Below are positions 6,669 to 28,711 of a stretch of 64,000 nucleotides of DNA, in pieces. The position numbers and the translations under genes were made by a program. The stretch is from positions 2,108,001-2,172,000 of the forward strand of contig JBNJNM010000021.1 in assembly GCA_052426225.1 (NCBI GenBank), given 5' to 3'. The notes beneath the pieces are model-generated. The model ran no database searches and was not told the origin of the DNA. It saw nothing but the letters and a program-made list of their open reading frames with translations. The stretch comes from Zancudomyces culisetae HAW-14-8 (Eukaryota > Fungi > Kickxellomycota). Numbering within the stretch: the stretch's first letter is position 1; each line of letters opens with the position of its first letter.

Positions 6669-9600
6669 CTATTTATCGCAATACTTCTCAATTCTACATT
6701 TATCATTTTTCAATCTAGCCTCCTCGCACAGAATGTTATTTATGGTGTCTGGTGGTGGTAACTTATCTCCTATATCTATATTTCCACAATAGTACTTAAT
6801 AGCCGCTTTATCGTTATCCTCTTTTGCCTTCTTACACAGGTTCTTAAATATCTCTTTTATTTTTTTACACGAATGTTTCTTATCCACAACATCGCGGCAG
6901 TATTTCTTGGCAAGTACATATCTCTTTCCCTTTATGGCAAGCGCACAAAGCACTCTATTTGTATCCGAGCATGGAGGATATTTGGAAATATCTGAAGGAC
7001 AATACTTCTCAATGTCCGCTTTGTTTTTTTCCTTTTTTGCTTTTTCACAAAGCTGTTTGTATTTGTTTATATGTGTAGGTGGTATGAATGGTCTGCAGTA
7101 TTTTCTTTTAGCTGCTACATCATTTTTTATGGCTGCTATAACACAGAGTATTTTGTATATTTCATCTATTGATGGAAGCTTGTCATCTTTATGGCTAATA
7201 TCTCGACAATATAGTTTGATTGTGCTAGGGTTTTTGGTTATTTGTGCGTACTTGCACAGATATTTATATATCTTTTTAATTGAGCAACCCAAACCTTCAT
7301 TTTTATCTGGTCTGCAGAACATGGCTATTTTTACCTTATCCTTCTGTAGTTTGCCCAAATGACATAGAATTTTGTTTGTATCATAACTAGGCAGTGGTGG
7401 GTTTGGAGGTCGAGGACAATACCTGTTTATGTTGTATGGGTTTCTTTCGATTTTGGCTTTTCTGCATAAAGTATCATAGTAGAACTTTTCGCTTGGTTTA
7501 TAGTCCCTGCAATACTTTTTAATTTTTGGATAATCCTTTGCGATTCTGGCCTCAATACACAGCATTTTGGTTATTTCACACAATGGAGGGTGGTTTGGAC
7601 CAATATCTGAAGGCTCTTTGCAATACTTTTTGATATCGCGACGATTTTTCTCTCTCTTGGCCTTCAGGCATAGGTTTGAGTAGACCTTATCGACAACAAT
7701 AACTGTAACTACGTTTTTACAATACTTTATAATGTTTTTAACGTTGTTTCGTGATCGAGCAATCGAACACAGTATTCGGTTAATTTGGGAAGTGGATGGT
7801 TTTCCAGCCGCCAATCCTGTACAATATCTCTTTATATCGACTTTGTTTCCAGAAATTTTGGCCGCACGACATCTTCTAAAGTACACGTCGTTTTGATTCA
7901 CAGAGTTTTTATCAACGCAGTACAGGCTAACGCCTTTTACATCAAAGCAGAGTTTGGAATTTTGACATTGTATTTTATAAAAATATTTTAGTGGAGGAAC
8001 CTTGATTTCGGTATTTTCTAGAGAAGCACAGAAGAACTCAATTTCAGCCTTGTTTCTGCTCTTTTTGGCTTCCGCACAGAGTTGCCTGTATATTTTTTTG
8101 ATATCAAGCAGCTTAGAGGAATTGTTTGTAAATTTCGGGCAGTAATTATCTATATCGGCTTGGGATTTTGACGCTTTTGCCAAAGAGCACATAAACCTTT
8201 CAACACTCTCTAGGGGAGGCTTAGGATTGCTTGAGGTATGACAGTACAGCATTTTGTTTTTGTTGTCACCACTTAACATGGCCTCAAAACACATTTTTGT
8301 GTACACGTTTTGACTATCTGCACTATTGAATATCGGGCAGTACAAACGCATTTTTTTCCGGTCATTTCTAAGCTTTGCCTCTACACACAATGCACGAATC
8401 ACCTCATCTTTCGAGATTGGTAACTCTGTCTTACGTGTTAGATCTCTGCAATATTGTGCTTTTTTATTATGGGCTTTTCTTGTTGCATGTTGACATAACC
8501 TTTTGTAAACATCCGTTATTATAAGATCAAGTTTTGTGTAATCAACACCCTTTCCAAGAAGACAGTATTTTCTAATATCTGCACTATCTCCGCTCATTCT
8601 AGCCAAGCTACAGTGTACTCTGTAAACATCTTTTATTTGTGGAATCGTTATTGAACCTACATTCACATTGTCGGGTTTGCAGTACTTTTCAATTCCTGAA
8701 GCATTTTTACTCTTCTTTGCATCTTTGCATTTGGTCTCATATGTATCAACCATTTTTTTATCTGATGAATCTAACATATCCCTATCCGCTACACTGCAGA
8801 AATGTGTTGTGAATGACTGGGCTCCTAACATAAATGCCTCTCTACATAAGATTGCTTCTAACTCTCTACGTGGAATAATTCTAAAAGGTTGTCCGACAAT
8901 TTCTCTACAATATGTTGCAGTAGCCTTGCTTTTGTTCTCTCTCTTTGCCTGTTTACATAGTTCCCCATATATTTTTACCAAAGGTGGGGGTTCAACCTTT
9001 ACTTTTTCCAACGGTTTGCAGTATTGGCTTATAGCATAATTGCTGGAGGATTTTAGGCCGAATCCACAAAGCACTCTAAAAATATGCACAACATGCATGT
9101 TTTTTTTTGGTCTTGGAACAATTCCCCTGCAGTACCTTTGCATTCTTCCGATATCATGTACGTATGATGCCTCCAGACACAGTCTGAGATACGGGTTCAA
9201 ATATCTAGCCTTTTTATCGAACCACGTACCATAGTCCTTAAAAGCAACCCTGCGTCTATTAACTCGGTCATTTTCGTCAGATATTGCCTGTAGAATGACT
9301 ATATCTGGGGTGGTATCAGATACCTGTATAATTTCGTTACAGTATATAGAAAGTCTATAATAGTCTAAAAAATTTTTTGCACGACCACACAAAGCTGAAA
9401 GAATTCGGTTTAGATTCATTGCTTTTGCAGATGCAATGTTTGCACTATTACAGAACTTTGATTTTGCATCCTTATTTTGACTTCTTAGTGCTAGGGCACA
9501 CTTAACCATAACTATCTTTGCCACCTGGTCATTTCCATGTGTTAGGGAATTTGGTGATAGCTCTGAATCCGTGTCTTGTGTCCCAAGAGAACCTAATTGC

Positions 9601-10397
9601 TCTAATGGGTTTTTCTCTTCCGCTGCACTCAAAGCTTCGACAAGAATATTATTGTACTTTTCTTGTTGATCATTTTCTGATTTTTGCTGTTGTTCTACTG
9701 CGTCACTTATCTTTTCTGAGTGTTGATTTTTCGAACCACTGTTTTCAGCGGATGTTATGCTATTCAGAGCATCTCTAACAGGCTTATTTGCAGCCATGTC
9801 TGCAGGGTCTTCGGTATACTCAACGAGCTTTAAATATTCTTCAATCAAACCATCTAGCTTGGCTCCGCTAAGCGGTCCGTAGTTATTCTGCTTCTGCACA
9901 TCACAGTACATTTGTTTGAGCTGTGTATTGTCTTGCTCTGTTGCTCTATTACATAGTCTTTGGTAGAGATAGTTAAGTGGAATATTATTTGTAGGTTCTG
10001 TTGTGTCATCCAAACAGTATATTTTTGATAGGTGTTTATTGTTATTTAATTTGCTCGATTCACAGTTTATTCTATCTGAAACGGCACTTTTTCGCATAGC
10101 CTCATCATAAGTAGGCTCAAATATTTTGTCATTAGTATATATTATCATGGCTCCCTCCGATTTTGTGTAGTTGCCATTGTGACTGATATCTACCTTTCCT
10201 GAATTTAATATTGAGGTGTCAACGGATACTGGTTCAATAGAGTTCCTTTTCTCATCTTGCCATGTATTTTTTAGACTCTTTGGACTAAAATCTCGGTTTT
10301 CGCTAAGATCATTGTGACTTTTATTTGTATTATCAATGGTTAGACACTCCGCGCCGAGTAGAGTGAAAGAAACCAATAATGATATATTTTTCAACAT
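6669..10397 (-). CDS. Secreted Cys/Lys/Tyr-rich tandem-repeat protein (28 x C-x15-C units), unknown function
   Basis: 1242-aa intronless ORF. N-terminal signal peptide MLKNISLLVSFTLLGAEC. Repeated YxxLCxxAKxxxNxxxIxKYC motif. No TM or GPI tail. Confidence 0.9.
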   Translation of the reverse strand: MLKNISLLVSFTLLGAECLTIDNTNKSHNDLSENRDFSPKSLKNTWQDEKRNSIEPVSVDTSILNSGKVDISHNGNYTKSEGAMIIYTNDKIFEPTYDEAMRKSAVSDRINCESSKLNNNKHLSKIYCLDDTTEPTNNIPLNYLYQRLCNRATEQDNTQLKQMYCDVQKQNNYGPLSGAKLDGLIEEYLKLVEYTEDPADMAANKPVRDALNSITSAENSGSKNQHSEKISDAVEQQQKSENDQQEKYNNILVEALSAAEEKNPLEQLGSLGTQDTDSELSPNSLTHGNDQVAKIVMVKCALALRSQNKDAKSKFCNSANIASAKAMNLNRILSALCGRAKNFLDYYRLSIYCNEIIQVSDTTPDIVILQAISDENDRVNRRRVAFKDYGTWFDKKARYLNPYLRLCLEASYVHDIGRMQRYCRGIVPRPKKNMHVVHIFRVLCGFGLKSSSNYAISQYCKPLEKVKVEPPPLVKIYGELCKQAKRENKSKATATYCREIVGQPFRIIPRRELEAILCREAFMLGAQSFTTHFCSVADRDMLDSSDKKMVDTYETKCKDAKKSKNASGIEKYCKPDNVNVGSITIPQIKDVYRVHCSLARMSGDSADIRKYCLLGKGVDYTKLDLIITDVYKRLCQHATRKAHNKKAQYCRDLTRKTELPISKDEVIRALCVEAKLRNDRKKMRLYCPIFNSADSQNVYTKMCFEAMLSGDNKNKMLYCHTSSNPKPPLESVERFMCSLAKASKSQADIDNYCPKFTNNSSKLLDIKKIYRQLCAEAKKSRNKAEIEFFCASLENTEIKVPPLKYFYKIQCQNSKLCFDVKGVSLYCVDKNSVNQNDVYFRRCRAAKISGNKVDIKRYCTGLAAGKPSTSQINRILCSIARSRNNVKNIIKYCKNVVTVIVVDKVYSNLCLKAKREKNRRDIKKYCKEPSDIGPNHPPLCEITKMLCIEARIAKDYPKIKKYCRDYKPSEKFYYDTLCRKAKIERNPYNINRYCPRPPNPPLPSYDTNKILCHLGKLQKDKVKIAMFCRPDKNEGLGCSIKKIYKYLCKYAQITKNPSTIKLYCRDISHKDDKLPSIDEIYKILCVIAAIKNDVAAKRKYCRPFIPPTHINKYKQLCEKAKKEKNKADIEKYCPSDISKYPPCSDTNRVLCALAIKGKRYVLAKKYCRDVVDKKHSCKKIKEIFKNLCKKAKEDNDKAAIKYYCGNIDIGDKLPPPDTINNILCEEARLKNDKCRIEKYCDK

Positions 10398-12000
10398 ATT
10401 TACTTTTCTTTTACCCCCCCTTATGGTTGATTATTTGTTCTGCAATCCTCTATATCTGAGTAGTATTATGTATTTGACTCAAAATCTGGCACTTAGAAAA
10501 ACTGGTAATACAAAAAAATAAGTCTTAATATTGTTCTTTGACTCCTGGCGTTTATTGATTTTTTGACTAAAGTTCTTTTATAGAGCATTTATAGCAACAA
10601 AAAAACAATTTTACTAAAGCTTATATCGCCTATTTTTCTATGTCAGATTTTCCACTTAGGAATGCCTCAAATAGTAACTTTGATCAACATTTAATACTCA
10701 AACGTTAATGCTAAATTTTCTAGACTGTTTGAACAAGTCGCTTGCTACTTTTTTTTAAAAATAAATTGTTATTAGGCATAAAACATAACTTTGGAAGCTG
10801 GACCATTTTGTAGATCCAAATTCACTCATGAAAGCAAGACATAACCTAAATGCAATAATATATTCCAGCTTTGTTCTGGGTCTAACATTAATTTTAGTTA
10901 TAACCTCTTTTTACTATGGTATAGTACTATGAATATCAATATTTAAGCTGCAATATATCTGGCACATTTCTTTTAAGGGCTCCTACTGGCTCTTTAGTTC
11001 AAGTATACCCCCATTTTTTGATAACTGCTTTGGTGCATAAATATCCAAAAAAAAAAGTAATGGAACCACAGGTGGTAGAACCAGAAAAGCAGCAATTGGG
11101 TGCTTGGTTGAGAAATTGAGTTTAATATGGGATCTAGCTCGCTTTTTTTATTTAGGATTTACCCCTAAAGTGTCTAGATTTTAAAGTATATAACAATTCG
11201 CCATGCTAGCCATAGGATACGCTTATATTGGATGAAAAATGAGGTATATCAGTATTGTAGTTCTAAATACAAAGTTATCCACATAATATTATCAGACCCT
11301 TGAAGGTGAATGGTGAAGTATTCTAACGTAGTTCCTTTTAATTATATCCTTGCCTCTACTGGTATGTGGTTGGTCATAAAACTTGCTTCTAGCCAATAGC
11401 TACTGTACGCAGTCTAGATTAGCGAAACTAAGAAAAACTAATTTTTTTACTGACCAATTTTGCGATAATATGGATAAGAAACTGAAAAGGATATTGAACT
11501 ACAGGTGAAGTGAGTGTTTGTGGAGTTGTATATTAACTAAGGTATATGTTTTACTGTGCAAAAGGCTTACATTTTTATCACTAACCGAGCTGTGGCATAA
11601 AAATAATGGTGAAAAAATAGCTGATTTGCCAAACTCTGCAATAGTATCCTGATAACTCCGGCTCAGAATGAAGTCGCCAAGAAAAAGGTAGTGTTATAAA
11701 AAAAAGTTACTTCATGTAATACTAAAAATAGAGTAGTATCATAATAGAGGTTATAATGTTATATATTGATCCAGAGAACATGAAAGTCATTTTTAGAGTA
11801 CCCTGAACTAAGAACTAAACAGAGTAACAGAAAAGCAACAAGTGAGAAGGTTGGTAATAAAAAACATTCATAGAGTTGAGGTGTACATACGACACAAAAT
11901 AATCAGGTGTACAAAAATTTACGAATTTACACATGGTTCCTATAATAAATGGTGTAGAGTAGATCATGTTTAAGCCATGGACGTAATATGACACGCTGTG

Positions 12001-12045
12001 TTACTACTGAGTAGTAAAAGTCGCATATACCCACTACTCAGCAGT
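12001..12045. other. Nested palindrome / 13-bp inverted-arm element near the outer end of the IR arm (mirror copy 28344-28388)
   Basis: ttactact-g-agtagtaa is a palindrome with a 1-nt centre. actactgagtagt (12003-12015) and actactcagcagt (12033-12045) are inverted arms with one mismatch and a 17-nt spacer. Confidence 0.75.
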
Positions 12046-12323
12046 CATATTTCGGCTTAAATGTAAAACCAGGCGCTCAAGCTTATGTACTCGAGTATAA
12101 ATCAGTTTATTGATTATTTAAATACCTAACCTAAAACAAACATCAGATACAAAATAAATCAATTATGTGACATTCAGATAATGCTAAAACATGTAAAATG
12201 CCAATGTGATGGTAATAGTCATAGTAATAGTCATAGTAATGGTCATAGTGTGTTGATGATACAGCGTTTCAAAAATCACACCCTCTCCATTCCCTTCTTC
12301 TTTTTGACTCATTCATTCTTTTA

Positions 12324-12686
12324 CTAAAGCCAGTAGTACAAGATTCTCGCTGAGCTGTAGTACTTGTATGTTGACCCCAATCTCTTTTGTAAGTGTGCCT
12401 GTTCTTCACTAAACATCTGGTCCAAGTACTGGACAACCTCTGCTGCCTTTTCTGATTTGCCTGTATCTGGTGACTGCATTTCCTCCTTCAACTTTGTCAT
12501 GATTGCACGATCACTGGCTGCTTCTCCGTTCCCAACCATAATTACTGGCACCATGTTTGAGTTTCCAGTAACTGGTGTGTCTCTTGGCAATCCGCTGTTG
12601 TCTTGGACATTGATTGGTGCCGCTGGCATAGAAAGCACCCCTGTAACCAATCCGGCGGTCATAAATGTAGCTGCTGAGATTCTCAT
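12324..12686 (-). CDS. Secreted prepro-peptide precursor, copy 1 (120 aa; Kex2-type KR site releasing an 18-aa Tyr/Trp-rich peptide)
   Basis: ATG in AAAAATG context. Signal peptide MRISAATFMTAGLVTGVLS, acidic pro-region, then LQKR|LGSTYKYYSSARILYYWL-stop. TATAAATA about 125 nt upstream. Confidence 0.85.
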   Translation of the reverse strand: MRISAATFMTAGLVTGVLSMPAAPINVQDNSGLPRDTPVTGNSNMVPVIMVGNGEAASDRAIMTKLKEEMQSPDTGKSEKAAEVVQYLDQMFSEEQAHLQKRLGSTYKYYSSARILYYWL

Positions 12687-12811
12687 TTTTGTGGTTTTTA
12701 CTTGAGTGTAGATGGTGTTTTGTATTGTATTGTTTTGTTTTGTTTGTATCAAACGGTTTTGTATCAATTGATATTGTGTGTAGATAATAAAATAAAGGAT
12801 GTAGTGAAGGG

Positions 12812-12819
12812 TATTTATA
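12812..12819 (-). promoter_or_regulatory. TATA box of peptide-precursor gene, copy 1
   Basis: TATAAATA on the minus strand, followed by an A/C-rich 5' UTR-like tract before the ATG. Confidence 0.65.
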
Positions 12820-12829
12820 TCTGTTTTGG

Positions 12830-12966
12830 ATGTATGTATATATTTGTATATGTGTATGACTATGTGTATATTTGTGTATATTTGTGTATGTGTATATTTG
12901 TGTATGTGTATATTTGTGTATGCGTATATTTGTGTATGCGTATATTTGTGTATGCGTATATTTGTA
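12830..12966. repeat. About 18-nt minisatellite (tatatttgtgtatgYg-type) immediately upstream of the TATA box
   Basis: Repeating gtgtatatttgtgtatg(t/c) units; mirrored at 27423-27559. Confidence 0.85.
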
Positions 12967-13193
12967 ATGCTATTTAATCTACATTTACTTTGCTTCTTAA
13001 AACTCAGTTCATATCTTAAACCATGTACTTTTTAAAAGATCATTGTACCTGTTCCTTGAAATTATCCACTAATGTTTTATAAAGGCATCTTTTAGACAAA
13101 CTGTTTGTGAGTAATGAAATATAACACATTGTATTCTCGATCCTTGTAACATTTTAACTTCCAAAGGTCTTTATAAGCATTGTTTCATTTTGC

Positions 13194-13270
13194 ACTTTCC
13201 ACTTTCCACTTTCCACTTTCCACTTTCCACTTTCCACTTTCCACTTTCCACTTTCCACTTTCCATTTTCC
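13194..13270. repeat. (ACTTTCC)10 heptamer array plus one degenerate unit
   Basis: Perfect 7-mer array at 13194-13263; mirrored as (GGAAAGT)n at 27119-27195. Confidence 0.95.
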
Positions 13271-14832
13271 TCAGTGTAATTTATCTACTACTATGTCCAT
13301 TTATATTCTTACCAAATCTTAGCTTTACCAATGACGTTTACTGGTTGAACTGCAGCAATCAAATGTGGTGGTTTTAAAGCCAGATAAAGTTTTGGTATTT
13401 AAAAAGGATCTTTGAAATTCTAAACCATCTTCAATTTCCATCACTTTTATAATGGGTCTTTTAATTTTGTGCAAAATACTAAGAGCTTTCTGTTTACATG
13501 TTTGGATAATTAAGGTTGGTAAATGGATGTGTATTTGGACTAAATAGCCATAACGAATACATTTATGGATTACAAAACACTTAGTATACAATTTTTGATC
13601 TGTTTCTTCCTTCAAAACACGTACTCGAGTGTTTCACCAAAGAATATCAAAAGTAGATCAGTGAATAATGGTTGGTAATTAATAACTAATGGTCAATGAG
13701 CTAGGATATGCACTAACAACCCAACAATATCTAACTCTTCTGTTTTTTTCAGTAACAAACTGATCCAAAAAATATACTTTTTCAAACAACCACCGTATCT
13801 ACAACCAGCATTTCAAAATGTATTCTGTGACTTTTTCTGCATTTTTACATGGTTCAAATCAACCAAGTACCAGAATACACACCACATTGAACGTTGTTTA
13901 GTAAACAACGATATTGGCTGAGGTAGTAGTTGATATACCTCATTTTTAATTTCTATCGTCACTAAAAAGTAGCAAACAACAGAAAATGAACAAAAAAAGT
14001 ACAAATGGACAAAACAAGATCCAATGCGCTACAACTACATACACTACTATTGAGAAATAGTCAAACATGAAATGGTATAGCATTAATGCCCAGACTGTAC
14101 TTTTATCGAGTGTTCTATTTACATGTTTGTATTTGAACATTATGCCATTTATTGGCTATCAAAACTGACAATATACTAGCAGTTAGTCATTATTAATGCT
14201 ATTATTATCACTCACAAACTCACAAACTCACAAACTCATAAAAATAGATACCACACAAATCTCCGAAACGCAGAGTGTGTCTGTAGTAATAGCGAAAAAT
14301 ACTGAATTGTAAGAGTAAAAAACTCAGGATTTATTACGACTGTGTAACATTTTGTACGCTTGTGATATAAAAAAGTCAAACAAAGCAAGGTATGGTATAA
14401 GAGTGGAAATGAGATGGGAATAGATAAAGGCAAATAGTATCATATCACCCAACACCAAGTTTACAGAGTAGAAGCGAGTGAGGTGGAATTCAATGATATT
14501 TCTATTAATGTGTCTGTCTAGAATGTCGTACAGTGGTGAATAAATTCACATATCGGATATCGAATATTTGTAGAGCTACTAATTGACCAATACGTATATC
14601 ACTCCTTTTCTTGGCTACATCTATACCCATGATATCCTTCTGATTAAGTAGCCTCTTGATCCCTTCTTTCATCGTTTTTAGCTTATTTCTCAACCAATAG
14701 TTTTAAACTCGATTTGTGATTTGAAAAATTTTGTCCTTTGATTTTGGTGCCCACTTTTTAATCTCGAATATCAAACCAAAACTCTCTTTTACACTCAGAT
14801 TCAGACCAAAATCAATAAAATACCAACATAAA

Positions 14833-15539
14833 ATGAGGAGAATTATAGAAGACATCAAGCTATACCGACAAATTAAAAGGAGTCTTAGAAAACAGGTATA
14901 TTTTACTTTTTGTTGTATGAATGGGTTTATGATCGAGATTTTCGTGGTTTGAAATCGTCAGTTTGTGCTAGATATATTTTATCGTCAGTTTGGTATCCAA
15001 GCCAGCCTCTTACTGTATTTTTCCCCAAACCTAATAGTACCTTGGCGTTTTAGTTCATGCTATTTTATCTGTAATAGCTATATTTTTGCAAAACTAATCA
15101 CAAATCTCCCTCCCCTTTTTTTATAGGTTACTAAGGTGAATCAAAACAAATTTTGGGAAAACGAGCTTCGAGCGATCACCATCGAGAACAAACTTAACGG
15201 TGTCTCGGCATCTAAACTTAAACAGAATAACTATTCAGATTTCAGATTCAATGACCTGGATTTGAAGCTCAAAGATGCTCTCGATGTGAACACATTCCTG
15301 TACAACAGCAGAAAATACAATGTAAGCTTTCATTCGCAGTTTACTGTTGATTCATATCATATCAATCTCTCAGATTTGGGTTTTGTAGTTTAATTTTTTT
15401 TGAATGGCAATAATAGGACTTGATAAAACTCTACAACCCAGGAATGACACAAAAGGAGCTTGTTGAAAAAACTGCGAGAAGAGTGGGCCTTTCGGTTCCC
15501 CAACAATCAGACTCCTTCGATACCGCCAAATCCGAGTAA
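14833..15539 (+). CDS. FMC1: Mitochondrial ATP synthase assembly factor Fmc1 (LYR family); 3 exons 14833-14895, 15127-15321, 15417-15539 (126 aa)
   Basis: The spliced product has N-terminal LYR (KLYRQIKRSL) and C-terminal YNDLIKLYNPGMTQKELVEKTARRVGLSVP. Both introns are GT-AG and keep frame. Confidence 0.85.
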
Positions 15540-15794
15540 TAAGATAGTATAAAAAGAAGCTGGGGGAGAGGTATTGTTGTAGAAGTGCATGGAGAAGTGT
15601 ATTGATTGTTACTCTACTTCAACTGCGTTATCAATATCGAGTTTACTTGGCCTTGGTGCTTTCATTTAGGCTAGTATGCATTGTTATTCCAATAGATAAA
15701 ATCGTTAATATCGCTTTTTATCTTTTGCTCAAATAATCCGGTTTATTTTTGACAATGTTTATTAAAATACATGTAAAACCTTCTAATCAATAAT

Positions 15795-18700
15795 CTAATA
15801 TGGCTGGATTGGAAAAAGGAAGTTGAACAAAACTAGTGTAGCCAAGGGGATAATCAGGTTGTCATTTTGTAGTGTTAATGCTTCCAGCAGACCTAGTTTT
15901 TGTTAACAAAGTATTGTGGTAATGTTACTATTTATAAAGTGAGAGAAATGGGCGATTCAACAAAGACAATAGAAAAGTATATAAAAGTATAGTAGTTTTA
16001 GCAATTAAATCTGTCTCACTTACCAACAATCAATGATATAAAGGTTATACACAAAACCTACAGGTATTTATCCAAGGGTTTATATTTACCTTCCAGTTTG
16101 GATTGTGATACACTGGAATTTATAGTAAAATAGAAAAACGTTTGAATATAAACATAGTATAATAGCTGAGTGCTGGCAACTTACATTTAAAGTGAATGTA
16201 AAAACCGAATACCTGCCATATGTGACAAGGTATACAATGATAAACATGAAATGCATTGAAAAAACAAATCCCAGTGAACCTTCAACGGTCTTTTTGGTTC
16301 TAAACCATTTACTTTTTCCATACAACTGACCAACGATCGAAGCCTATGTAAATATTGTACATATTATATATTATTGCAGAGATTTGGCTTAGTCAAAAAA
16401 CATGTGTTGGGAAGCGAAATAGTCACTAGCATATACAAGGTGGAAGTAGAAAAACTTACCACAGAATCAGACACACCGAGTGTGATTATACCTGCGTACA
16501 TAGTTATGGAACCAAATCTACGTATTTGCATAGAAAAAAAACCATTTTAGCTCAATTCGCTCGCAAAGCATAATTCAAATACTTTTTTAAAGAGGTTCTT
16601 ACGAGTTGAGCCAGATTGGGAGAGCGCACCCCAAGAGGAGATAAAAGTGTGATGTAATGTTAAAACCCGAATCCTTTTCATCAACAAAGTCGGCCAAAAA
16701 CCCATCAATAATACTTGAAATAGGATGAATGTCGATTACACGAATAGATTCGACTATACACATGGCAAACAGCCCCACCGATAATCCAAGAGAGGTCCAA
16801 TTACTTGATAGGTTTATGGCAGGGACGAGCATAAATATGATCAAAAGGTGGTAATACTTTCGCCGAAGATGCAGTGCCAGTGACGAGTTGTTGGATAGTG
16901 ATGATTTGGGAAGTAAAAGGTACAGGCCAGCGGAAATAGATATCAATATGATCCAGTAGAAACAAAGGATGCAGTTTCTCACGTCCAAAAAAGTAAATTC
17001 GAGCACCCTGGTATTTCGATATTTGAAAGATTGGACAACAACGTTAGCCAAAAAAAAGGGGGGTATCACAGTAAAAGGTATGAGTAAGCTAGAAACAAAC
17101 AGTTTGTAGTTTAAAATACTTACCATAGTATAAGATCAACCTTTGCATGGAGGTAAAAACCGATATACAGCACCAATATTCCGACCAAATAGCAGAATAC
17201 ATAGCGGGTTAATCCTAAAAAGTTTTTTACTCGCAATTTGTGGGTTTCTGTGCTTATACCATCCAGAGTGTTGGTAATCGATTTAGGCTTCATAAAGAGC
17301 AAAAGAAGTGAGGTGACAACCATTGAAACAACTGAACAGATTAAAAATATCTGCACTCTTGCCACTTCACTATTTGCACTTGAATTCTATTTATTTATTT
17401 TTCAATATAAGGTATACATCAATCATGATTCAGTATGAGAGAGCCACAACACGTAGAAATAGTCAATAGAAATAATTGTTATATTGCTCGAATCGCGATA
17501 AATTAAGCTAAAAACAATCATTCTTGATTTTTAGTTTTAGAGCAACTAACCTTGTCGATGGAACCTGAGATATAAGTAACAATACAAAATACGATAGCTT
17601 GCGAGATCAATGTTGTTTCTGCAAAAGAAAAGCTTTTAGCCATCTTGGTTGGGAGCATCATTACAAAAAGTTGCATCAGCGTCACTGTGAAAAACATGGG
17701 AATCATCGCAAAATCTATTAGGCGATATATACAAGTACAAGCTTAGAACATCCTTCTTCAAAGCTTAACACTGATACTAAAAAAATAGCATTGTTGGTGA
17801 TTAAACACATATAATAGTTGGGCTATACACAACTGTGTGTATTAAGGACATTACCGAAATGTAAGATGAGCTTAAACAATAACAGTGGGATCAATGCAGA
17901 GCCGAATGTGATTATTTTTTGGAATCTCGTGAATACTGGGTGTAACTTTTTTTCCAAGGAGATCGACATTAGGGTCGAAAATCCGTGTATTTGCAGTGAT
18001 ACCAACCACCCTGTCATAGAAATAGTACCCAAACAAATGGATTAGTACAATTTACTGTTTAAATATGTCCAGGTGTGTATTATTTCCATTAAATATACAA
18101 AGGAAAAAAAGAAAAAAAATAAACATAATCTTTTGTTGTATTTACATGTATAGTTGTGCAGTCTGTCCAAATCCAGCTGGATAAGGCGATGTTCCAAACT
18201 CGTCATTGAAAGTAGAACCAAAGGCGAAAGGAGTACCGCATATATCAACCCATTGTTGACATTTGGCCTATTGTGGTAATTATTTGTTTTGTTTTTTTAG
18301 CGACCATTTTGTGCACCGATTAGCTAATAAGTACTTCATGATGTGCAAATAGAACAGCCATAAAACCCGCTCATAAGCAACATCAAATGCGCCTAAAGAA
18401 GCTGCAATATAAAAGTTTAAAAAAAAATACCTGAAGTTGTGGCATGGTATTCCCCAAAGCGACGCTTCTTGGGACTCTGGTCGAATATGATTATGCACAT
18501 GGTTACGTTTTCTACCGATGGGGTTTGTTCGCTCGATAATGTTTGAATCGCCGTTTAGTATTCCGTACACAATGTAAAAAGTCAACCCTGAAAGCATGCA
18601 AAATGCTATTGCGGGAAAAAGAATGGCATTTTTAGATAAGCATGTGTAGTTAAACAATGTTGCACTATAAACTCCAATATCCTGACCAAAGAAAAATACA

Positions 18701-19091
18701 ATAAAAAGACAGGGTTTATATTTCTCAGTGTACATAATATAAAGGAACAAAGTAATAACAGCTCGATTCAGTCACTTACAAAATACCAAAGCCATCGAAT
18801 CTAAATTGATACCGTTGGTCAAATCATGGGTAATATACGCTTCTATTTTGAGTAGTGGTACTTGTTCATAACAATATTCGCCTCCAGTAACCAAGAACAC
18901 AAATAAAATACAGATACGGGTGGCAAAATACCCTAAATGAGGATTGTAGAATTTTTCAAACTGCAACATTTGTTGCAAGAGTAACCGGATTTACCTTTAA
19001 CAGATAGGATAGACACCAGTACTACAACAATTCCGAAAATGAAATTTTCCAACTCGGTCCCCGACTTGAGATTCAATAGGTAGTTGAACAT
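15795..19091 (-). CDS. SEC59: Dolichol kinase, multi-exon (internal boundaries only partly resolved)
   Basis: Exon fragments LRRKYYHLL, SHFYLLLGCALPIWL, GIITLGVSDS, TKKTVEGS and terminal GLLEALTLQNDNLIIPL...QPY-stop. Probable ATG at 19091. Confidence 0.85.
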
Positions 19092-19921
19092 CTTGGAAAA
19101 TCGTAGGCGAACTTTTGATGCAAATCTTTCGTAGTTAGGTTGGTATATTAAGGTTTAATCAGGGAGAATGCCTATGAAGGATATTTGAAATGGTTTTCAA
19201 ACTTTCAAAAATAGAAACCTGTTTCAAATAATACTCGATGAAGAGTTATGTTGAAAGTGTGCCAAGTAGTGAGGTTTTACTAAATGACTGCAAAATTAAT
19301 TGAGTAAATAAAAATTATAACTAAACTAAAAAAGATAAAATCACGATAATTTAAATGGTTAATTTACGGATTTGGCGTGAGAATGGCAGGGAAAAAAATA
19401 GTATGATTTTTCGCCGAACTGGAATTGTTGGAAATATAAAGATGTGCTAGAACAATGTATTAGGGTTTGTAGAGAACAAGTGCCAATGTGTATATTTTAG
19501 AAACCAGCCAGCACATCCTACGCTTCTGCTCATTGAGATGTACCAAGGTTCTTCTGTATAACAGATGGCTCTTTATATGCCTGTTGAATCAGTTTGTTGC
19601 AGCAAAAAACCATATTGCTAAAAAAAAAATTTTTTTTGTCTTCTTTGATTTTGATTTGACGGGTATAGTAAACATGCTTTTGTAAGGGAAAAAAATCAAA
19701 AAAACACCAGAAAACGATAGCTTTTCTCTGGTATTTTGGAGAATAGGATGAGCTAGTAGACCTGAATCGTTATCATTTTATTGCAATTCGTTTTTGTTAA
19801 ATCCTGGGTTAGTTTTTTTTCTGTCTGATACAAACTTTTAGAATTTGAATCAGAATTCGCATTCAGTTAACCAAAAGTGTTAAAAAAAAACGAATACATA
19901 GAGGGAACTGTACACGCTAAA

Positions 19922-20999
19922 ATGATTCCGAATAGATTATTTTCGATGCAGTCTAGTAGAACCCTGCAAGGCCTCAGCAAAAATTCTAAACCGATCGGCA
20001 AAGCGTACAGCGTTCTTTCGGGCGCATTAGCCAACCAAGTTTCAAAAAAAACTCAACAACAACGATATAGCGTACTGGCGAATACAACGACAGGGGAACA
20101 ATACGAAGGGGTAAAAGATGGTGGAATAGCACAGCAAGTAGATTTAGGTAAATCATATTTGTTTTATATTTTTTTCCCCAAGCAAGAGGAGAGAAAAGAA
20201 AGGAAAAGAAAAGAAAAAAGATGTGCTAACAATATATGTGTAAATAGAATATGATCCCAAGTATGGATTCAAACAACACAACGACCACCCACTATTCACT
20301 CCACAGCCAGTATATACAATGGTGCAGGATATCAACAATCCATACACACCAGTCAAAATGATCGCGCTGGACAGCACAGTGTTCAATGCAACAATCCGCG
20401 GGGATATACTGCATCGATGTGTGACCTACGAGCGCAACAGTCTGCGACAGGGCACACATTCCACAAAGACAATCAGCGATATACGTGGAAGTGCCAAGAA
20501 ACAGGCATCACAAAAGGGGCGTGGTAAGGCAAGAATTGGTACACATCGTGCACCACAGTTCCGAACAGGAGCAGTGGCGCATGGGCCACAGCCACAGTCG
20601 CATGCAACTGAGCTTCAACGCAAGGTGTGGCAGCTCGGATTCCGTAGTCTGCTAAGTGCCAAGTTCCTGCAAAATGAACTGGTAGTATTTGAAGATTTGA
20701 AGCTGGCAAATTTCAAGACTAGAGACTTTGTCGAATTGATGCATGAGCATGGACTAGTGAGCCGTAGTGAGGATGTAATGAAGACAAATGGGCATATGAT
20801 GGTATTGACAGATGCTGAGAGACAATGTAGCAGCGAAAGCAACGAATTGAAGAATTTGCAGTTGGCATGTAGAAACATTCTGGGGATCAAAATGGAGGAG
20901 GCTACAGATGCGCTGTTGTTTGATATACTGAGACACAAGTATTTGGCAATGGACTTGGCTACACTCCGAATGATTGAAGAGAGATTAAAAGTTTTTTAA
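19922..20999 (+). CDS. YML6: Mitochondrial large ribosomal subunit protein uL4m; exons 19922-20147, 20248-20999
   Basis: RQGTHSTKTISDIRGSAKKQASQKGRGKARIG...RAPQFRTGAVAHGP L4 signature. Basic/Ser-rich mitochondrial presequence. Phase-1 GT-AG intron with GCTAAC branch site. Confidence 0.9.
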
Positions 21000-21116
21000 G
21001 TTGTGTTGGCTGGGATATTTATAGCATTAAATATACGCAATAGCATAGTAATAATATAATATAATATAATAAATTAAATTAAAAAAAAATAAGAAAAAAA
21101 AAAGAGGTGGAGAAAA

Positions 21117-22889
21117 CTAATCAGAGTTAGAAGCATTTTCAGCATCAGAGGGAACAACCAAACTGCGACTGGTTGGACTGATGATGGGAATGGCTTTACT
21201 GTCAGATTTATGGATACTGATTATGGGTACTTGCGGAGTATCAGGGGTAGTGGCATGGATAGGAACAGGAGGAGCATTGAAGATTGCAGAGATACGATTG
21301 TTGCGTTTTTCCTGCAAAATACGAATCTGCTGCTGTCGCTGTGACGGAGCATCGCCGCTGGCGTTTGGAGAGTCCTCGGATGCCATGTTGATATTTTTCT
21401 GAGTGGAAGAACTAGCATACAGGGCAGGAGAAGAGGGTTGGTGAGGCTGATGAGGCCCGCTGGCGGTTGTGTTGTAGATGTTTGAGTGGTTGCGTGGAGT
21501 AAAACCACCCTTTGTACCACTGACAGTGGAGCTGCGCGACCGCATAAACCCAGACGCCAGACTCTCGAGTGGAGCAGTGTCGTCGAAATCCAAGCCCGAT
21601 TGCTGACCCAGGAGAGCCAGGTTGGATGTTGACAGCAGCGAGTTGCGGTTGGAGTTACGTGGCGGTGCCATGTTGCCCATCATCGACATTGGCCGTCCAC
21701 GCGCTTGCCTTGGTGGGTTGATGTTAAGATGCGAAAACTGTGGCGAGAGCATGGTTGACATGGTTGGACGGACCTCTGCAGCCTCAAGCAGTGTTTCCAG
21801 ATTTTTGTACAGTCGAATGCTTCGCTGGGTACCCGAACCTTTGGTCTCGTGGTTGAGCTTAAAATGCTCAGCCAGCAACATTGTCAATTGGCGTTGGTAA
21901 TGGTTGAGTGCTGGTGGCAGTTCCATCTCCGACACACTGTTGTCGCTTCTGAAATGGTTGATGACGTTGTATAGCAGCTTGGGGTCCTTTTCACGGAAAT
22001 CTACAAACCGCAACAAATCATTCTCGTCAAATTCCAGATTTCCAGGTTGGTATTCTTCGTCTCCCCCAAATCCCATTGGTGGCCGACCCCGCCCCATTAC
22101 ACCTTCATCCATCATCGCATGCTGCTTTCGGATTCCCATGTCTCCAATTCCTCTGAGGTCTGCTGCTCCACGCTCACGGCTCTCCTTGTTGTGTTGTGCA
22201 TCGTCGTCATGCATGGGCAATGTTTTTTTGTATTCTACCTTGATTGCTCGGCCCAACAACTTGTATCCATCCATTGTAACTATCACTCTAGCTGTATCTT
22301 CGTTGCTTCGGAAATTTCCAAATGCAAGCCCTTTAAAGTTGCCATTCTCGTAATGATAGTCAAATGCATATGGCAGTGGCAGCCCCAGACTCGTCATTAT
22401 TGAAAGGAATTCTGCTCGGCTTACCGCAAAATTTATGTTTTTGACCACTATCGCATTGGGAATCACATCTGCTGGTCGGTTTGCCATCAGCTCAAGCGCC
22501 TCCCCAGACAAGTCCTCTGGTCTACGTCCTCCACCTACTCCCATACCCATACCCATCCCCATACTCATTCCCATCCCCATACCTCTTCCCATTCCACTCG
22601 CTCCATTGGTTCCTCCTACATTTCCCGCCTTTCCGTAATACCCTCGCATTGTCATAATAGTATTTCTCCTGTTTGTTCTACCCACTTTCTCTCTCTCTCT
22701 TTGTTCTTCCCTGTCTGAACCTACAGCACCCTTATCTGCTGTTAATGCTGCTAGTGCTTCTCTTCTATTCTTGGCCTTAGCCTCTTCTCTACTCTGTTCC
22801 TCACTCACCTCTACTCTATTTCCGATATCAACCTCATTCTTGGTTTCTCCTACCACTGCTTTTTCCTCTGAGCCAGTTGCTTTTAACAT
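21117..22889 (-). CDS. RRM + R3H RNA-binding protein (Pin4/Cip1/Cip2 family)
   Basis: PNAIVVKNINFAV...LPLPYAFDYHYENGNFKGLAFGNF...GRAIKVEYKK (Pin4-type RRM) and LNHYQRQLTMLLAEHFKLNHETKGSGTQR (R3H-like). Confidence 0.85.
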   Translation of the reverse strand: MLKATGSEEKAVVGETKNEVDIGNRVEVSEEQSREEAKAKNRREALAALTADKGAVGSDREEQREREKVGRTNRRNTIMTMRGYYGKAGNVGGTNGASGMGRGMGMGMSMGMGMGMGVGGGRRPEDLSGEALELMANRPADVIPNAIVVKNINFAVSRAEFLSIMTSLGLPLPYAFDYHYENGNFKGLAFGNFRSNEDTARVIVTMDGYKLLGRAIKVEYKKTLPMHDDDAQHNKESRERGAADLRGIGDMGIRKQHAMMDEGVMGRGRPPMGFGGDEEYQPGNLEFDENDLLRFVDFREKDPKLLYNVINHFRSDNSVSEMELPPALNHYQRQLTMLLAEHFKLNHETKGSGTQRSIRLYKNLETLLEAAEVRPTMSTMLSPQFSHLNINPPRQARGRPMSMMGNMAPPRNSNRNSLLSTSNLALLGQQSGLDFDDTAPLESLASGFMRSRSSTVSGTKGGFTPRNHSNIYNTTASGPHQPHQPSSPALYASSSTQKNINMASEDSPNASGDAPSQRQQQIRILQEKRNNRISAIFNAPPVPIHATTPDTPQVPIISIHKSDSKAIPIISPTSRSLVVPSDAENASNSD

Positions 22890-23877
22890 TTTTTTCTTCC
22901 TTTTTCTTTTTCTTTATCTATTCTTTATGAGTTTTCTACAAGTTTCTCTTATACGTACCGAGAATTCGTTGAATTAAGTAGTTCTATTTCTATATTTGCT
23001 TCTTTCTTTATTTCTGCCACTCTTTGCACACGCTTATTTTGCTTTCTCTTTTACGTGTCGTGTAGCGCTGCTAAAAATTATTATATTTTCCTTTTTACTC
23101 TATTTTCTTTAATATGATGTCTGTTCCTTTATGTGTGCATCCCCCAATGTCGTTATTCATATATTATTTACAATCTTTGTACTGAATGTAACTGCTCTTG
23201 TTCAAACTTATTATGCTTTTTTTTTTGCAGTAAACCATAAATTCTATTTGCAATTAATATCTGGACTCTACCAAATTAGCCGTTTTTTGACGTTATATAT
23301 ATCTAATTCATAAATCTGTTCCTCTTAAACCCTCTGTTTATTACTTTTTTTTTGCTTTTATTGTTGCATTTATTATATACTTTTATAGCTTCAGGCTTTT
23401 AGTATTTCGTTCAGTATACGCCTACAGTTATCGTAAATATTCTTCTATCTATTTATCTGGAAATAAGCTCCCTTTTACTTCAAAACTTTTGGTCCATACT
23501 TAAATAAGTATGCAGGGAAGATGAAGTTGAACAAAATAATTAAAAGCCGAGAATAATGTATAGCACAAGACTAAATGCCATAAATGGTTTACCAAGCTTT
23601 TTTATTTTTATATTTTTTATTTTTGCTGCTTTTATTAAATCTGCATTTTAATCAGCCTTTTGAACTATTTTTTTCTGCAAATATTCTCCTTTTGGTTGGG
23701 AATTTGCATTCCATTACAAAAAAAAATGGATTGAAATCAACTTTGATTTGTAAATCTCGCAATTACTACTAATAATACTTTAAAACCATTCATCGGTTCA
23801 TTTTCCTTGGTTGCAAGTAAAACAAAGGAAATCGTTTTTACATTCATTCATTCACACATTCAACCAACATATATACT

Positions 23878-23980
23878 CCCTCTACCCTAACCCCTACCCA
23901 CTCCTCTACCCACTCCTCTACCCTAACCCCTACCCACTCCTCTACCCACTCCTCTACCCTAACCCCTACACACTCCCCTA
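23878..23980. repeat. C-rich ~36-nt tandem repeat (ctctaccctaacccctacccactcctctacccactc) x~2.5
   Basis: Directly visible; the minus strand carries repeated GGG runs. Confidence 0.85.
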
Positions 23981-26900
23981 CTTATTCCTTACCTATCCCC
24001 GCGCACTAATACCTATTTATTTATTTCCACACTCGTTCAACCTCGATGCATACCGCAGCAAGTTTGATTATTCTCTTGATCTTAAACTCTTGTTGTTTTA
24101 CATTTGAAAATGCTGGTGCTAACAACATGTTCTTTTCATATACTTGTTTGAGGAGAACAGTTTACGTTTATATTAATAATTATGATTATTTTACAATCGA
24201 CATGCATTTAATAGCGCCATAATATCTGCTTTAGCTGCACTTATTACAAATCCTCATATGATTCTATTGCCATACTTAAACTTTATTTCTTTCAATTAGC
24301 AATTTATAACTATTCCACCAATAACAGCCTAATAAGTGAATAGGTCCAAACTTATTCAATTTATTTATAAATAAGCAAAATACATATTCACCATGTGATG
24401 AGATTTGAGGAAACAACTTGCAATTGGCAATAACCCTAATATCCCCACCAGTCACTCTTTTATCTGTGGATTATACATACATTTTATGAGTATATTCAGC
24501 TTTTCTATAACTTCTCACAACTTTCCACACTCAAACCTACACAAAATAATGAAAATTAGCACACCAATACAATACTGCTATTTTTCACCATACAGATCGC
24601 ATCGATTATTATTTACACTCAGGTTCTACCCAATTTATCTTTTTTTGTTCAAAAAATAATTTAATTTGGTAATAAAATACCCAAAATCAAACAAAATGAT
24701 AATACATCTAGCTTTTTGTTTCGCTGAACTAACCCCTCTCCCTCCTCTCTACCCATTCATGAATTTCATCATTACCACCACCACCGCCTCCCCCAAAAAA
24801 AAGATTAGTGATAAAAATACCAAAAGTGTTGTATCACTTTAATAACTGCTGTTATAAGCGCAGAGCTTGCTATTTTACCTCCTCCTCCCAAAACTTTTCA
24901 TAGTTACATGGCTTTTGTACTGATATCTCCACAAAAGACGTCTCTAGTTACCAACGTTTGCTTTGGCTTTGGACACTAAACAAATAAAAACTACACTTCT
25001 AGTTTCACACTGATTTTTTTTTCGCCATGGAGCACGTATAGCTCATTTGCTTATTTGCCGCTATAACAACAATAAGCAAGAGTAATAACTTTTTTTTTTT
25101 ATCCATCATCTTACTTTCATGTTACTAGAAATACTCTTTCGGAAATCGTCAGCTTGAATTGGTACCTTTATCCCATTTGTGATTATCGTTTCCTGTATCA
25201 TAAAATTTTACTTACAAGTAAACACATTAAATCCATAATAATCTCATTTTTTACATCAATTGATTGAAAAAAACAGGCAAGCTATAAGCCCACTTTAACT
25301 GAACCCAGATGACAATAACAGTCTGCCCAAGGATTATCAATTCATAGTCCTGTATTAAAATATATGGACGTGATCGAAAGCGACATATCACCCATTAAAT
25401 AATAAGCATCCAGATAATCTATTCATCTAAATGTATAAGGATTGAGAATAATGCTATAACCTGAGTATCATTTTCAAAAATAAAAGACGGATGTCTATTT
25501 TTCAAAGCTTCACATAAAAACTGCGAAGAGCCCCAAACTACATTATGTTCATTAATTTTCTTGATCAAATTTACGCAAATAGTAAAAAATTCTGTGTTTA
25601 GATTGGCTTGTTTATGAAATCTAAAAAAATTATGCCAGATTACTCCACATGGCTGAAAGTGCTAAAATTGCATTGAAAATAATAACAACATCAATTTAAA
25701 ATAGCTAATGCCCAACCGTTCCTAGTGAGAGTCGGGAATTTCTAAAATAATAACAAAAACAAATAATTGAATAGTCAAAAAAAGGAGTGATATACGTATT
25801 GGTCAATTAGTAGCTCTACAAATATTCGATATCCGATATGTGAATTTATTCACCACTGTACGACATTCTAGACAGACACATTAATAGAAATATCATTGAA
25901 TTCCACCTCACTCGCTTCTACTCTGTAAACTTGGTGTTGGGTGATATGATACTATTTGCCTTTATCTATTCCCATCTCATTTCCACTCTTATACCATACC
26001 TTGCTTTGTTTGACTTTTTTATATCACAAGCGTACAAAATGTTACACAGTCGTAATAAATCCTGAGTTTTTTACTCTTACAATTCAGTATTTTTCGCTAT
26101 TACTACAGACACACTCTGCGTTTCGGAGATTTGTGTGGTATCTATTTTTATGAGTTTGTGAGTTTGTGAGTTTGTGAGTGATAATAATAGCATTAATAAT
26201 GACTAACTGCTAGTATATTGTCAGTTTTGATAGCCAATAAATGGCATAATGTTCAAATACAAACATGTAAATAGAACACTCGATAAAAGTACAGTCTGGG
26301 CATTAATGCTATACCATTTCATGTTTGACTATTTCTCAATAGTAGTGTATGTAGTTGTAGCGCATTGGATCTTGTTTTGTCCATTTGTACTTTTTTTGTT
26401 CATTTTCTGTTGTTTGCTACTTTTTAGTGACGATAGAAATTAAAAATGAGGTATATCAACTACTACCTCAGCCAATATCGTTGTTTACTAAACAACGTTC
26501 AATGTGGTGTGTATTCTGGTACTTGGTTGATTTGAACCATGTAAAAATGCAGAAAAAGTCACAGAATACATTTTGAAATGCTGGTTGTAGATACGGTGGT
26601 TGTTTGAAAAAGTATATTTTTTGGATCAGTTTGTTACTGAAAAAAACAGAAGAGTTAGATATTGTTGGGTTGTTAGTGCATATCCTAGCTCATTGACCAT
26701 TAGTTATTAATTACCAACCATTATTCACTGATCTACTTTTGATATTCTTTGGTGAAACACTCGAGTACGTGTTTTGAAGGAAGAAACAGATCAAAAATTG
26801 TATACTAAGTGTTTTGTAATCCATAAATGTATTCGTTATGGCTATTTAGTCCAAATACACATCCATTTACCAACCTTAATTATCCAAACATGTAAACAGA

Positions 26901-27569
26901 AAGCTCTTAGTATTTTGCACAAAATTAAAAGACCCATTATAAAAGTGATGGAAATTGAAGATGGTTTAGAATTTCAAAGATCCTTTTTAAATACCAAAAC
27001 TTTATCTGGCTTTAAAACCACCACATTTGATTGCTGCAGTTCAACCAGTAAACGTCATTGGTAAAGCTAAGATTTGGTAAGAATATAAATGGACATAGTA
27101 GTAGATAAATTACACTGAGGAAAATGGAAAGTGGAAAGTGGAAAGTGGAAAGTGGAAAGTGGAAAGTGGAAAGTGGAAAGTGGAAAGTGGAAAGTGCAAA
27201 ATGAAACAATGCTTATAAAGACCTTTGGAAGTTAAAATGTTACAAGGATCGAGAATACAATGTGTTATATTTCATTACTCACAAACAGTTTGTCTAAAAG
27301 ATGCCTTTATAAAACATTAGTGGATAATTTCAAGGAACAGGTACAATGATCTTTTAAAAAGTACATGGTTTAAGATATGAACTGAGTTTTAAGAAGCAAA
27401 GTAAATGTAGATTAAATAGCATTACAAATATACGCATACACAAATATACGCATACACAAATATACGCATACACAAATATACACATACACAAATATACACA
27501 TACACAAATATACACAAATATACACATAGTCATACACATATACAAATATATACATACATCCAAAACAGA

Positions 27570-27577
27570 TATAAATA
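27570..27577 (+). promoter_or_regulatory. TATA box of peptide-precursor gene, copy 2
   Basis: TATAAATA about 125 nt upstream of ATG 27703. Confidence 0.65.
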
Positions 27578-27702
27578 CCCTTCACTACATCCTTTATTTT
27601 ATTATCTACACACAATATCAATTGATACAAAACCGTTTGATACAAACAAAACAAAACAATACAATACAAAACACCATCTACACTCAAGTAAAAACCACAA
27701 AA

Positions 27703-28065
27703 ATGAGAATCTCAGCAGCTACATTTATGACCGCCGGATTGGTTACAGGGGTGCTTTCTATGCCAGCGGCACCAATCAATGTCCAAGACAACAGCGGATT
27801 GCCAAGAGACACACCAGTTACTGGAAACTCAAACATGGTGCCAGTAATTATGGTTGGGAACGGAGAAGCAGCCAGTGATCGTGCAATCATGACAAAGTTG
27901 AAGGAGGAAATGCAGTCACCAGATACAGGCAAATCAGAAAAGGCAGCAGAGGTTGTCCAGTACTTGGACCAGATGTTTAGTGAAGAACAGGCACACTTAC
28001 AAAAGAGATTGGGGTCAACATACAAGTACTACAGCTCAGCGAGAATCTTGTACTACTGGCTTTAG
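27703..28065 (+). CDS. Secreted prepro-peptide precursor, copy 2 (identical to copy 1)
   Basis: Same translation as 12324-12686. Confidence 0.85.
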   Translation: MRISAATFMTAGLVTGVLSMPAAPINVQDNSGLPRDTPVTGNSNMVPVIMVGNGEAASDRAIMTKLKEEMQSPDTGKSEKAAEVVQYLDQMFSEEQAHLQKRLGSTYKYYSSARILYYWL

Positions 28066-28711
28066 TAAAAGAATGAATGAGTCAAAAAGAAGAAGGGAAT
28101 GGAGAGGGTGTGATTTTTGAAACGCTGTATCATCAACACACTATGACCATTACTATGACTATTACTATGACTATTACCATCACATTGGCATTTTACATGT
28201 TTTAGCATTATCTGAATGTCACATAATTGATTTATTTTGTATCTGATGTTTGTTTTAGGTTAGGTATTTAAATAATCAATAAACTGATTTATACTCGAGT
28301 ACATAAGCTTGAGCGCCTGGTTTTACATTTAAGCCGAAATATGACTGCTGAGTAGTGGGTATATGCGACTTTTACTACTCAGTAGTAACACAGCGTGTCA
28401 TATTACGTCCATGGCTTAAACATGATATACTCTACATCATTTATTATAGGAACTATGTGTAAATTCGTATCTTTGGTACACTTTACCATTTTACGAGATT
28501 AGTGACCTTATCACCTTTCTGACAATTTTTTCCCGAATTGAATTTCTGGCATTTCAAACCTTTACCCCGCTTTATTTGTTGTCTCCACTTTTCCAAAAAT
28601 AAAGGATACAACCCAGCCAAGAAACCAAAAATTGTATTCTATTTAAATACTTATTGTTTCTCTTTTGGTTTGCGTTTTAAAGCGCCAAGGCTCAATGTTA
28701 GTATCGTACAA

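Follow-up and report, generated by a model that had tools for sequence, protein, structure and literature searches.

An inverted segmental duplication with a predicted secreted-peptide gene in each arm, and probable concerted evolution of the arms, in Zancudomyces culisetae

Zancudomyces culisetae is a Harpellales (Kickxellomycotina) gut symbiont of mosquito larvae. In strain HAW-14-8, a 64,000-nt stretch (C21:2108001-2172000 of a 27.09-Mb, 25-contig assembly; hereafter the window, to which all coordinates without a contig name refer) contains a large inverted repeat whose two arms each carry the same predicted prepro-peptide gene and enclose a unique segment with housekeeping genes. A repeat-finder assigns 2703 nt to each arm and 11,154 nt to the interval between them. 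The elements of this architecture are the following:

11915-14617, unstranded: left arm of the inverted repeat, with a perfect core at 11963-14609, an outer fringe at 11915-11962 and an inner fringe at 14610-14617
25772-28474, unstranded: right arm of the inverted repeat, with a perfect core at 25780-28426
14618-25771, unstranded: unique enclosed segment of 11,154 bp, in the same orientation relative to its flanks in the copy on contig C20
12324-12686, minus strand: left prepro-peptide gene (predicted), a 120-aa orphan transcribed outward, with its C-terminal 18-mer encoded at 12327-12380
27703-28065, plus strand: right prepro-peptide gene (predicted), identical in sequence to the left copy and transcribed outward
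12831-12965, unstranded: minisatellite with a 16-nt period according to Tandem Repeats Finder (TRF), upstream of the peptide gene; mirror copy at 27424-27558
13189-13270, unstranded: (TTTCCAC)n microsatellite of 11.7 units; mirror copy at 27119-27200

Compared base by base in mirror orientation, 11963-14609 and 25780-28426 show 0 mismatches and 0 indels over 2647 bp. A preliminary description of this DNA had read the arms as mirror images free of indels and had proposed a self-alignment as a check on their identity; that alignment has been made, and the core is perfect over its whole length. Mismatches are confined to the fringes, whose divergence had likewise been pointed out: the outer fringe (48 nt) is mismatched at five positions (11918-19, 11935, 11952 and 11962; 5/48, or ~10% divergence), the inner fringe (8 nt) at two (14610 and 14614), and arm-to-arm similarity ends completely past 11914 and 14617. 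Both tandem arrays are the same in the two window arms, and their unit number is altered in the C20 copy. The array formerly given as (ACTTTCC)10 corresponds to (TTTCCAC)n with 11.7 units read in another phase; the minisatellite described with it is also present in the arms, with the period of 16 nt found by TRF replacing the earlier value of 18. In the 27-Mb genome, just four copies of the arm exist, two at each of two loci, and the arm is therefore not a dispersed repeat or a transposon family. An interpretation of the arms as a transposon or as terminal inverted repeats was rejected on the basis of these four copies and of the housekeeping genes in the spacer.

The HAW-14-8 assembly was obtained from PacBio-HiFi data at 48x using hifiasm/FinisherSC, and comprises 27.18 Mb in 26 contigs, including a redundant mitochondrial contig (PMC12611240). 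Its second copy of the locus lies on contig C20 (85,847 bp), whose reverse strand is collinear with window positions 6971-63992 across the left arm, the central segment and the right arm, so that the enclosed segment is oriented alike in the two HAW-14-8 copies. In unique DNA, the divergence between the window and C20 in single-nucleotide polymorphisms (SNPs) is 0.30-0.34% beside the repeat, rising to 0.63% in the right flank. C20 opens with 20 kb for which the rest of the assembly offers no near-identical match, and ~43 kb of C21 (2171412-2214669) are missing from it. The contig could be either a haplotig, if the strain is heterozygous or heterokaryotic, or a genuine paralogous copy produced by a large segmental duplication. 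A further, partial copy comes from the Illumina assembly of strain COL-18-3 (GCA_001969505.1), two contigs of which match the window at 98.7% identity (~97-99%). One of them, L023, extends from the central segment into the left arm as far as 11984, stopping 21 nt before the outer end of the core as aligned and hence short of the diagnostic outer fringe; the other, L027, starts midway along the right arm (27124) and continues into the central segment. Both inner junctions are therefore present in another strain, sequenced with another technology. Found in two strains and in two copies of the locus, the duplication is a real and old structure.

Six arm sequences were aligned: W_L and W_R from the window, C_b and C_a from C20, and N_L and the partial N_R from COL-18-3. 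The window arms differ at 0/2626 aligned sites. Those of C20 are distinguished by 20 SNPs in 2608 sites (0.77%) and six indel events, with both tandem arrays changed in unit number: C_b has three extra (TTTCCAC)n units, and its number of minisatellite units differs as well. The COL-18-3 arms show 0/666 differences over 13265-13930 and 14 SNPs in 678 sites over 13931-14609, with five indels in the inner 1.35 kb. Thirteen SNPs within 13931-14609 are private to N_R, and the inner 680 bp of this right arm have an SNP divergence of 2.7-3.0% from all other arms. It is because of this value, together with the ~10% divergence of the fringes, that the duplication is judged to be old.

The distribution of the variants carries a signature of conversion. 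Six lineage-specific variants are found in both arms of their lineage, namely 12595 in C20, 14491 in the window and 13429, 13865, 14261 and 14287 in COL-18-3. Moreover, several sharing patterns are incompatible on one tree, with 12651 uniting C_a and N_L, 12923 and 12939 uniting C_b and N_L, and 12595 uniting C_a and C_b. Among the six aligned arms, no core site distinguishes left from right arms throughout the lineages; immediately beyond the core, every site does. At the outer edge, the left-arm states at 11935, 11952 and 11962 are present in C_a and absent from W_R, and conversion therefore stopped at different points in the two copies. Had the window arms diverged at the rate observed locally between the two locus copies, a complete lack of differences would have a probability of 1.8e-4; with the arm-to-arm rate of C20, this falls to 1.5e-9.

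Each arm consists of one 363-nt open reading frame (ORF), ~1.9 kb of upstream sequence that includes the tandem arrays, and 0.4 kb of downstream sequence. As read from its translation, the 120-aa product would begin with a hydrophobic, signal-like N-terminus, followed by a pro-region, a putative KR processing site (residues 101-102) and a Tyr/Trp-rich C-terminal 18-mer. It is 98% identical to AX774_g3895 of COL-18-3, has no Pfam domain (MF_alpha included) in a Pfam scan, and has no paralogue elsewhere in the HAW-14-8 genome. Both a word-indexed search of 5.8 billion proteins and an exhaustive HMMER scan of 1.84 billion representative proteins returned only the COL-18-3 orthologue, with no homologue beyond the species. 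A match to a 1461-aa protein was set aside as one of composition, spanning just hydrophobic residues 13-33 of the peptide. In the Atlas feature search, the alpha-factor precursor family ranked top at 0.80, a chance-level value often reached by shuffled sequences. The ORF is intact in the five sampled copies, among which it varies by T7A, A11V, S31N, G54E and two synonymous sites, so that 4/6 codon changes are non-synonymous; the last 66 residues are invariant. A species-specific orphan gene for a secreted peptide is a plausible prediction, and a role in signalling remains a predicted one.

The locus is probably an old inverted segmental duplication whose arms evolve in concert by repeated inter-arm gene conversion. 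The earlier suggestion of an older duplication that is repeatedly homogenised finds support in the lineage variants common to both arms, in the tree-incompatible sharing, in the absence of position-specific core sites and in the differing conversion endpoints. In such a history, a 2.7-kb unit with the peptide gene would have been copied in mirror orientation across an 11.2-kb housekeeping block, and double-strand breaks in one arm would then have been repaired from the other, amounting to non-allelic gene conversion. Conversion tracts of hundreds to thousands of bases, ending where homology stops, would leave the core homogenised and the fringes diverged. In the window copy, all differences over 2647 bp would probably have been erased by a recent round of conversion, later than the split from C20, with the arms of C20 and COL-18-3 having presumably been homogenised in part only. 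Repair linked to crossover could now and then invert the segment, as a passive by-product involving no regulated switch, and the practical effect of the arrangement would be two identical doses of the peptide gene.

Several points weigh against this interpretation. Both the perfect match of the window arms and the orientation of the segment are read from the assembly, and three copies of the locus, one of them partial, were sampled, from which neither the length of the tracts nor the number of conversion events is resolvable. The view that the C20 arms predate the split of the locus copies has only moderate support (Fisher p 0.002 with nearby unique DNA as the reference, 0.036 with all unique DNA), as divergence varies regionally from 0.30 to 0.63% SNPs. 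Expression and processing of the peptide gene are predicted. Variable sites are, furthermore, equally dense in its coding sequence (7/363 bases) and in the remaining arm (47/~2626), and, with most of its codon changes non-synonymous, there is no positive sign of purifying selection on the gene.

Within and around the inverted repeat, the remaining genes are as follows:

19877-20999, plus strand: gene for mitochondrial ribosomal protein uL4m, in two ORF pieces (Ribosomal_L4, E 3e-49); 317 aa in the COL-18-3 annotation
21117-22889, minus strand: gene for a Pin4-like RNA-binding protein of 590 aa, with RRM and R3H domains (Pfam); relatives are annotated PIN4
16086-19091, minus strand: string of short membrane-protein-like ORF pieces in different frames, previously labelled dolichol kinase, a label without confirmation
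6669-10397, minus strand: left flanking gene for a 1242-aa repeat protein; contig C20 ends within its homologue
28538-31546, plus strand: right flanking gene for a leucine-rich-repeat (LRR) protein, whose open frame starts ~60 nt past the outer end of the right arm

Four enclosed genes had been named in the preliminary description. The assignments of uL4m and of the Pin4-like gene stand on the domains listed above, and those of dolichol kinase and FMC1 found no Pfam support on single, unjoined ORF pieces. The genes of the enclosed segment appear to be spliced. Single ORF pieces of the 16086-19091 region have no Pfam match, and the COL-18-3 annotation leaves the region without a gene; it represents either a gene split by many introns or one in decay. 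Pfam searches of the scanned ORFs detected only Ribosomal_L4, R3H, RRM and LRR, with no recombinase and no mating-type (MAT) domain, and neither tRNA genes nor Rfam families were found within 6000-32000. In Furculomyces boomerangus, the uL4m and Pin4-like genes are also neighbours (8654-11982) and are co-oriented, whereas the Z. culisetae pair (19877-22889) is convergent, which points to a small local inversion affecting one of the genes after the lineages parted. No further gene of the window is shared in the 22 kb around the Furculomyces pair, and the Smittium mucronatum locus has almost no annotated neighbour genes, so that neither relative reveals the ancestral orientation of the segment.

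Comparable arrangements recur in the HAW-14-8 genome. Three examples, on contigs C8, C10 and C6, were reached through leads in search outputs and confirmed by self-BLAST, a procedure that gives no estimate of density. The C8 pair (C8:1487727-1490075 and 1501352-1503727) has 2.4-kb arms of 93% identity (95% in a sub-tract) around an 11.3-kb spacer in which further ORFs lie; both arms contain an ORF (352-355 aa, no Pfam match) and a (TTTCCAC)n-like array as in the window arms. On C10 (1274522-1280534 and 1289056-1295068), arms of 6013 bp with one mismatch are separated by 8521 bp, and each bears adjacent tRNA-Glu(CTC) and tRNA-Met(CAT) genes. The region C6:1715499-1752354 is part of a nest of inverted repeats within 50 kb, which includes a 2882-bp pair that differs at one position and is separated by 8.6 kb, pairs of 1294 and 1214 bp with one mismatch each, and pairs of 1.0-2.3 kb at 95.9-97.3% identity; a tRNA-Glu/tRNA-Met pair is found on both of its sides, in opposite orientation. 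On these examples, the locus in the window seems to belong to a class that recurs in the genome and not to be a special device.

Were crossovers to occur between the arms, both orientations of the enclosed segment would be expected among strains or, rarely, within cultures, without any regulatory purpose. Such a passive flip/flop inversion polymorphism, which would extend the concerted evolution of the arms, is possible, if rather doubtful. It would be favoured by 2.65 kb of perfect homology 11 kb apart and by the direct signs of repeated inter-arm recombination. Moreover, kilobase-scale inverted repeats are known to drive recurrent inversions, and conversion between them to be occasionally accompanied by crossovers that flip the spacer, in yeast (PMC9731477) and in human (PMC3723533, PMC3961182). 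However, the window and C20, both of them full copies, agree in orientation despite an arm identity of at least 99%, and the COL-18-3 contigs, which end within the arms, leave orientation unreadable. A true orientation switch, with the 11-kb block flipping at appreciable frequency, its orientation affecting expression of the outward-facing peptide genes or of flanking or enclosed genes, and the locus belonging to a genome-wide class of gene-bearing invertible cassettes, is very unlikely.

A programmed and regulated version of the switch, in which orientation would control expression of the peptide gene or of enclosed genes as in flip-flop mating-type switching, is highly improbable. Its appeal lies in a layout like that of the inverted-repeat-bounded invertible regions of Ogataea and Komagataella (PMC5720833, PMC4238957), in a predicted secreted prepro-peptide whose top feature match is, at chance level, to alpha-factor precursors, and in retroelement-rich DNA that begins ~18 kb rightward. 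Against it, the genome has 17 HMG-box matches, all of them outside the window and C20, and the scanned ORFs have neither a recombinase nor a MAT-type domain; the preliminary description had likewise seen no HMG or homeodomain MAT gene and no recombinase inside. An alpha-box search also gave no match, but neither did its control. The arm genes are identical, so that flipping swaps nothing between them; the arms are free to diverge in C20 and COL-18-3; an equal layout is found at unrelated loci with tRNA genes or other ORFs; and both HAW-14-8 copies are in one orientation. A regulated switch is considered unlikely because of the identical arm genes, the lack of MAT or recombinase genes among those found, the drift of the arms elsewhere and the recurrence of the layout. 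The mating-type analogy drawn in the preliminary description is similarly not sustained: the host belongs to Harpellales and is not a methylotrophic yeast, the copies are co-oriented and the layout is not unique.

HiFi reads typically exceed 2.7 kb, and a collapsed or invented arm is therefore unlikely. The notion that the assembler or finisher created the perfect identity, or one whole arm, takes its force from an exact 100% identity that includes unstable tandem arrays, from the FinisherSC post-processing and from the frequency of near-perfect inverted repeats in the assembly; it is hardly credible in view of the two-arm structure of C20 with its diverged arms, of the COL-18-3 Illumina contigs that hold both inner junctions, of 48x HiFi reads expected to be longer than the arms, and of the C8 arms, which at 93% identity are unlike what an artefact should yield. 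For the structure itself, an artefact is largely refuted. A very recent strain-specific duplication, previously put forward as an alternative in which the arms would be alike simply through newness, fits the zero differences between the window arms but is practically excluded, having already been refuted by the diverged fringes, by the inner part of N_R and by the inverted repeat of COL-18-3 and of the diverged C20 copy, whose existence rules out an assembly-made arm as well.

Concerted evolution of an old duplication, the preferred explanation, has parallels in other systems. Like the flip/flop (FF) region of S. cerevisiae chromosome XIV (Salzberg et al. 2022, PMC9731477), the locus has gene-bearing, kilobase-scale inverted repeats (4 kb there, 2.7 kb here) that flank ordinary genes (24 kb there, 11 kb here), neither being a MAT locus, and in both cases the arms are homogenised within a strain by recurrent gene conversion. 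The yeast region differs in that its two orientations are documented within and between species, whereas one orientation is seen in two copies in Z. culisetae; in addition, its arms carry Centroid sporulation genes instead of an orphan prepro-peptide gene, and the phylum is another (Zoopagomycota in the case of Z. culisetae). Sex-chromosome palindromes (human Y P1-P8, primate X; PMC3723533, PMC8327919) share with the locus gene-bearing arms of >99% identity, a unique spacer and conversion; their arms, however, are >10 kb and harbour testis-expressed gene families, whereas those of Z. culisetae are 2.7 kb and lie on a contig not known to be connected with sex. Rare inversions are reported for human Y palindrome P6 (PMC3723533). 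The Z. culisetae locus works like the FF region and the sex-chromosome palindromes, and is homologous to neither.

With the flip/flop MAT loci of Ogataea polymorpha and Komagataella (PMC4238957, PMC5720833, PMC6692504), the common ground is geometry only, that is, few-kb inverted repeats around a segment of 10-20 kb. Those loci have MATa and MATalpha at their ends, one of which is silenced by proximity to a centromere or telomere, and invert on nitrogen starvation; that of Z. culisetae has identical arm genes, no MAT-type genes among those found, and one orientation in both assembled copies. As for the peptide, the putative precursor resembles KEX2-processed secreted precursors and alpha-factor-type pheromones (PMC6339444, PMC7329392) in its signal-like N-terminus, pro-region and dibasic KR directly before a short peptide. 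KEX2-processed repeat proteins (KEPs) and alpha-factor precursors are, however, defined by several repeated cores (PMC6339444, PMC7329392), whereas the Z. culisetae precursor has one, with no MF_alpha match and no homologue outside the species in the searched proteins. The locus thus lacks both the gene content that defines flip/flop MAT loci and the repeated cores that define KEX2-processed pheromone-like precursors.

The six arm sequences from two strains capture the process at successive stages, from full homogenisation through 0.8% divergence to stepwise identity. No description of such loci in Harpellales was found in the literature searched. The locus is a thoroughly documented example of concerted evolution in a little-studied phylum, and points to a genome-wide pattern as well. 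At the level of the locus, the consequences would be modest, consisting of two identical doses of a predicted orphan secreted peptide and a potential inversion polymorphism; the recurrence of kilobase-scale, near-identical inverted duplications with 8-20-kb spacers is a wider point that may outweigh the single locus. Z. culisetae would be well suited to the study of how inverted segmental duplications arise, at what frequency they flip and whether fast-evolving secreted genes find shelter in them.

Two further observations concern the genome at large. Retroelement-like sequence (window 46308-49206; C21:2154308-2222205), which starts ~18 kb rightward of the inverted repeat, has dozens of copies that are 67-92% identical, several of which cluster within contigs, for example at C7:959-1001 kb and C13:1638-1656 kb. 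In addition, HMG-box matches are paired with identical scores between C6:2433736 and C12:429526 and between C6:2785589 and C12:87900, which suggests that C6 and C12 share large near-identical duplicated blocks or uncollapsed haplotypes.

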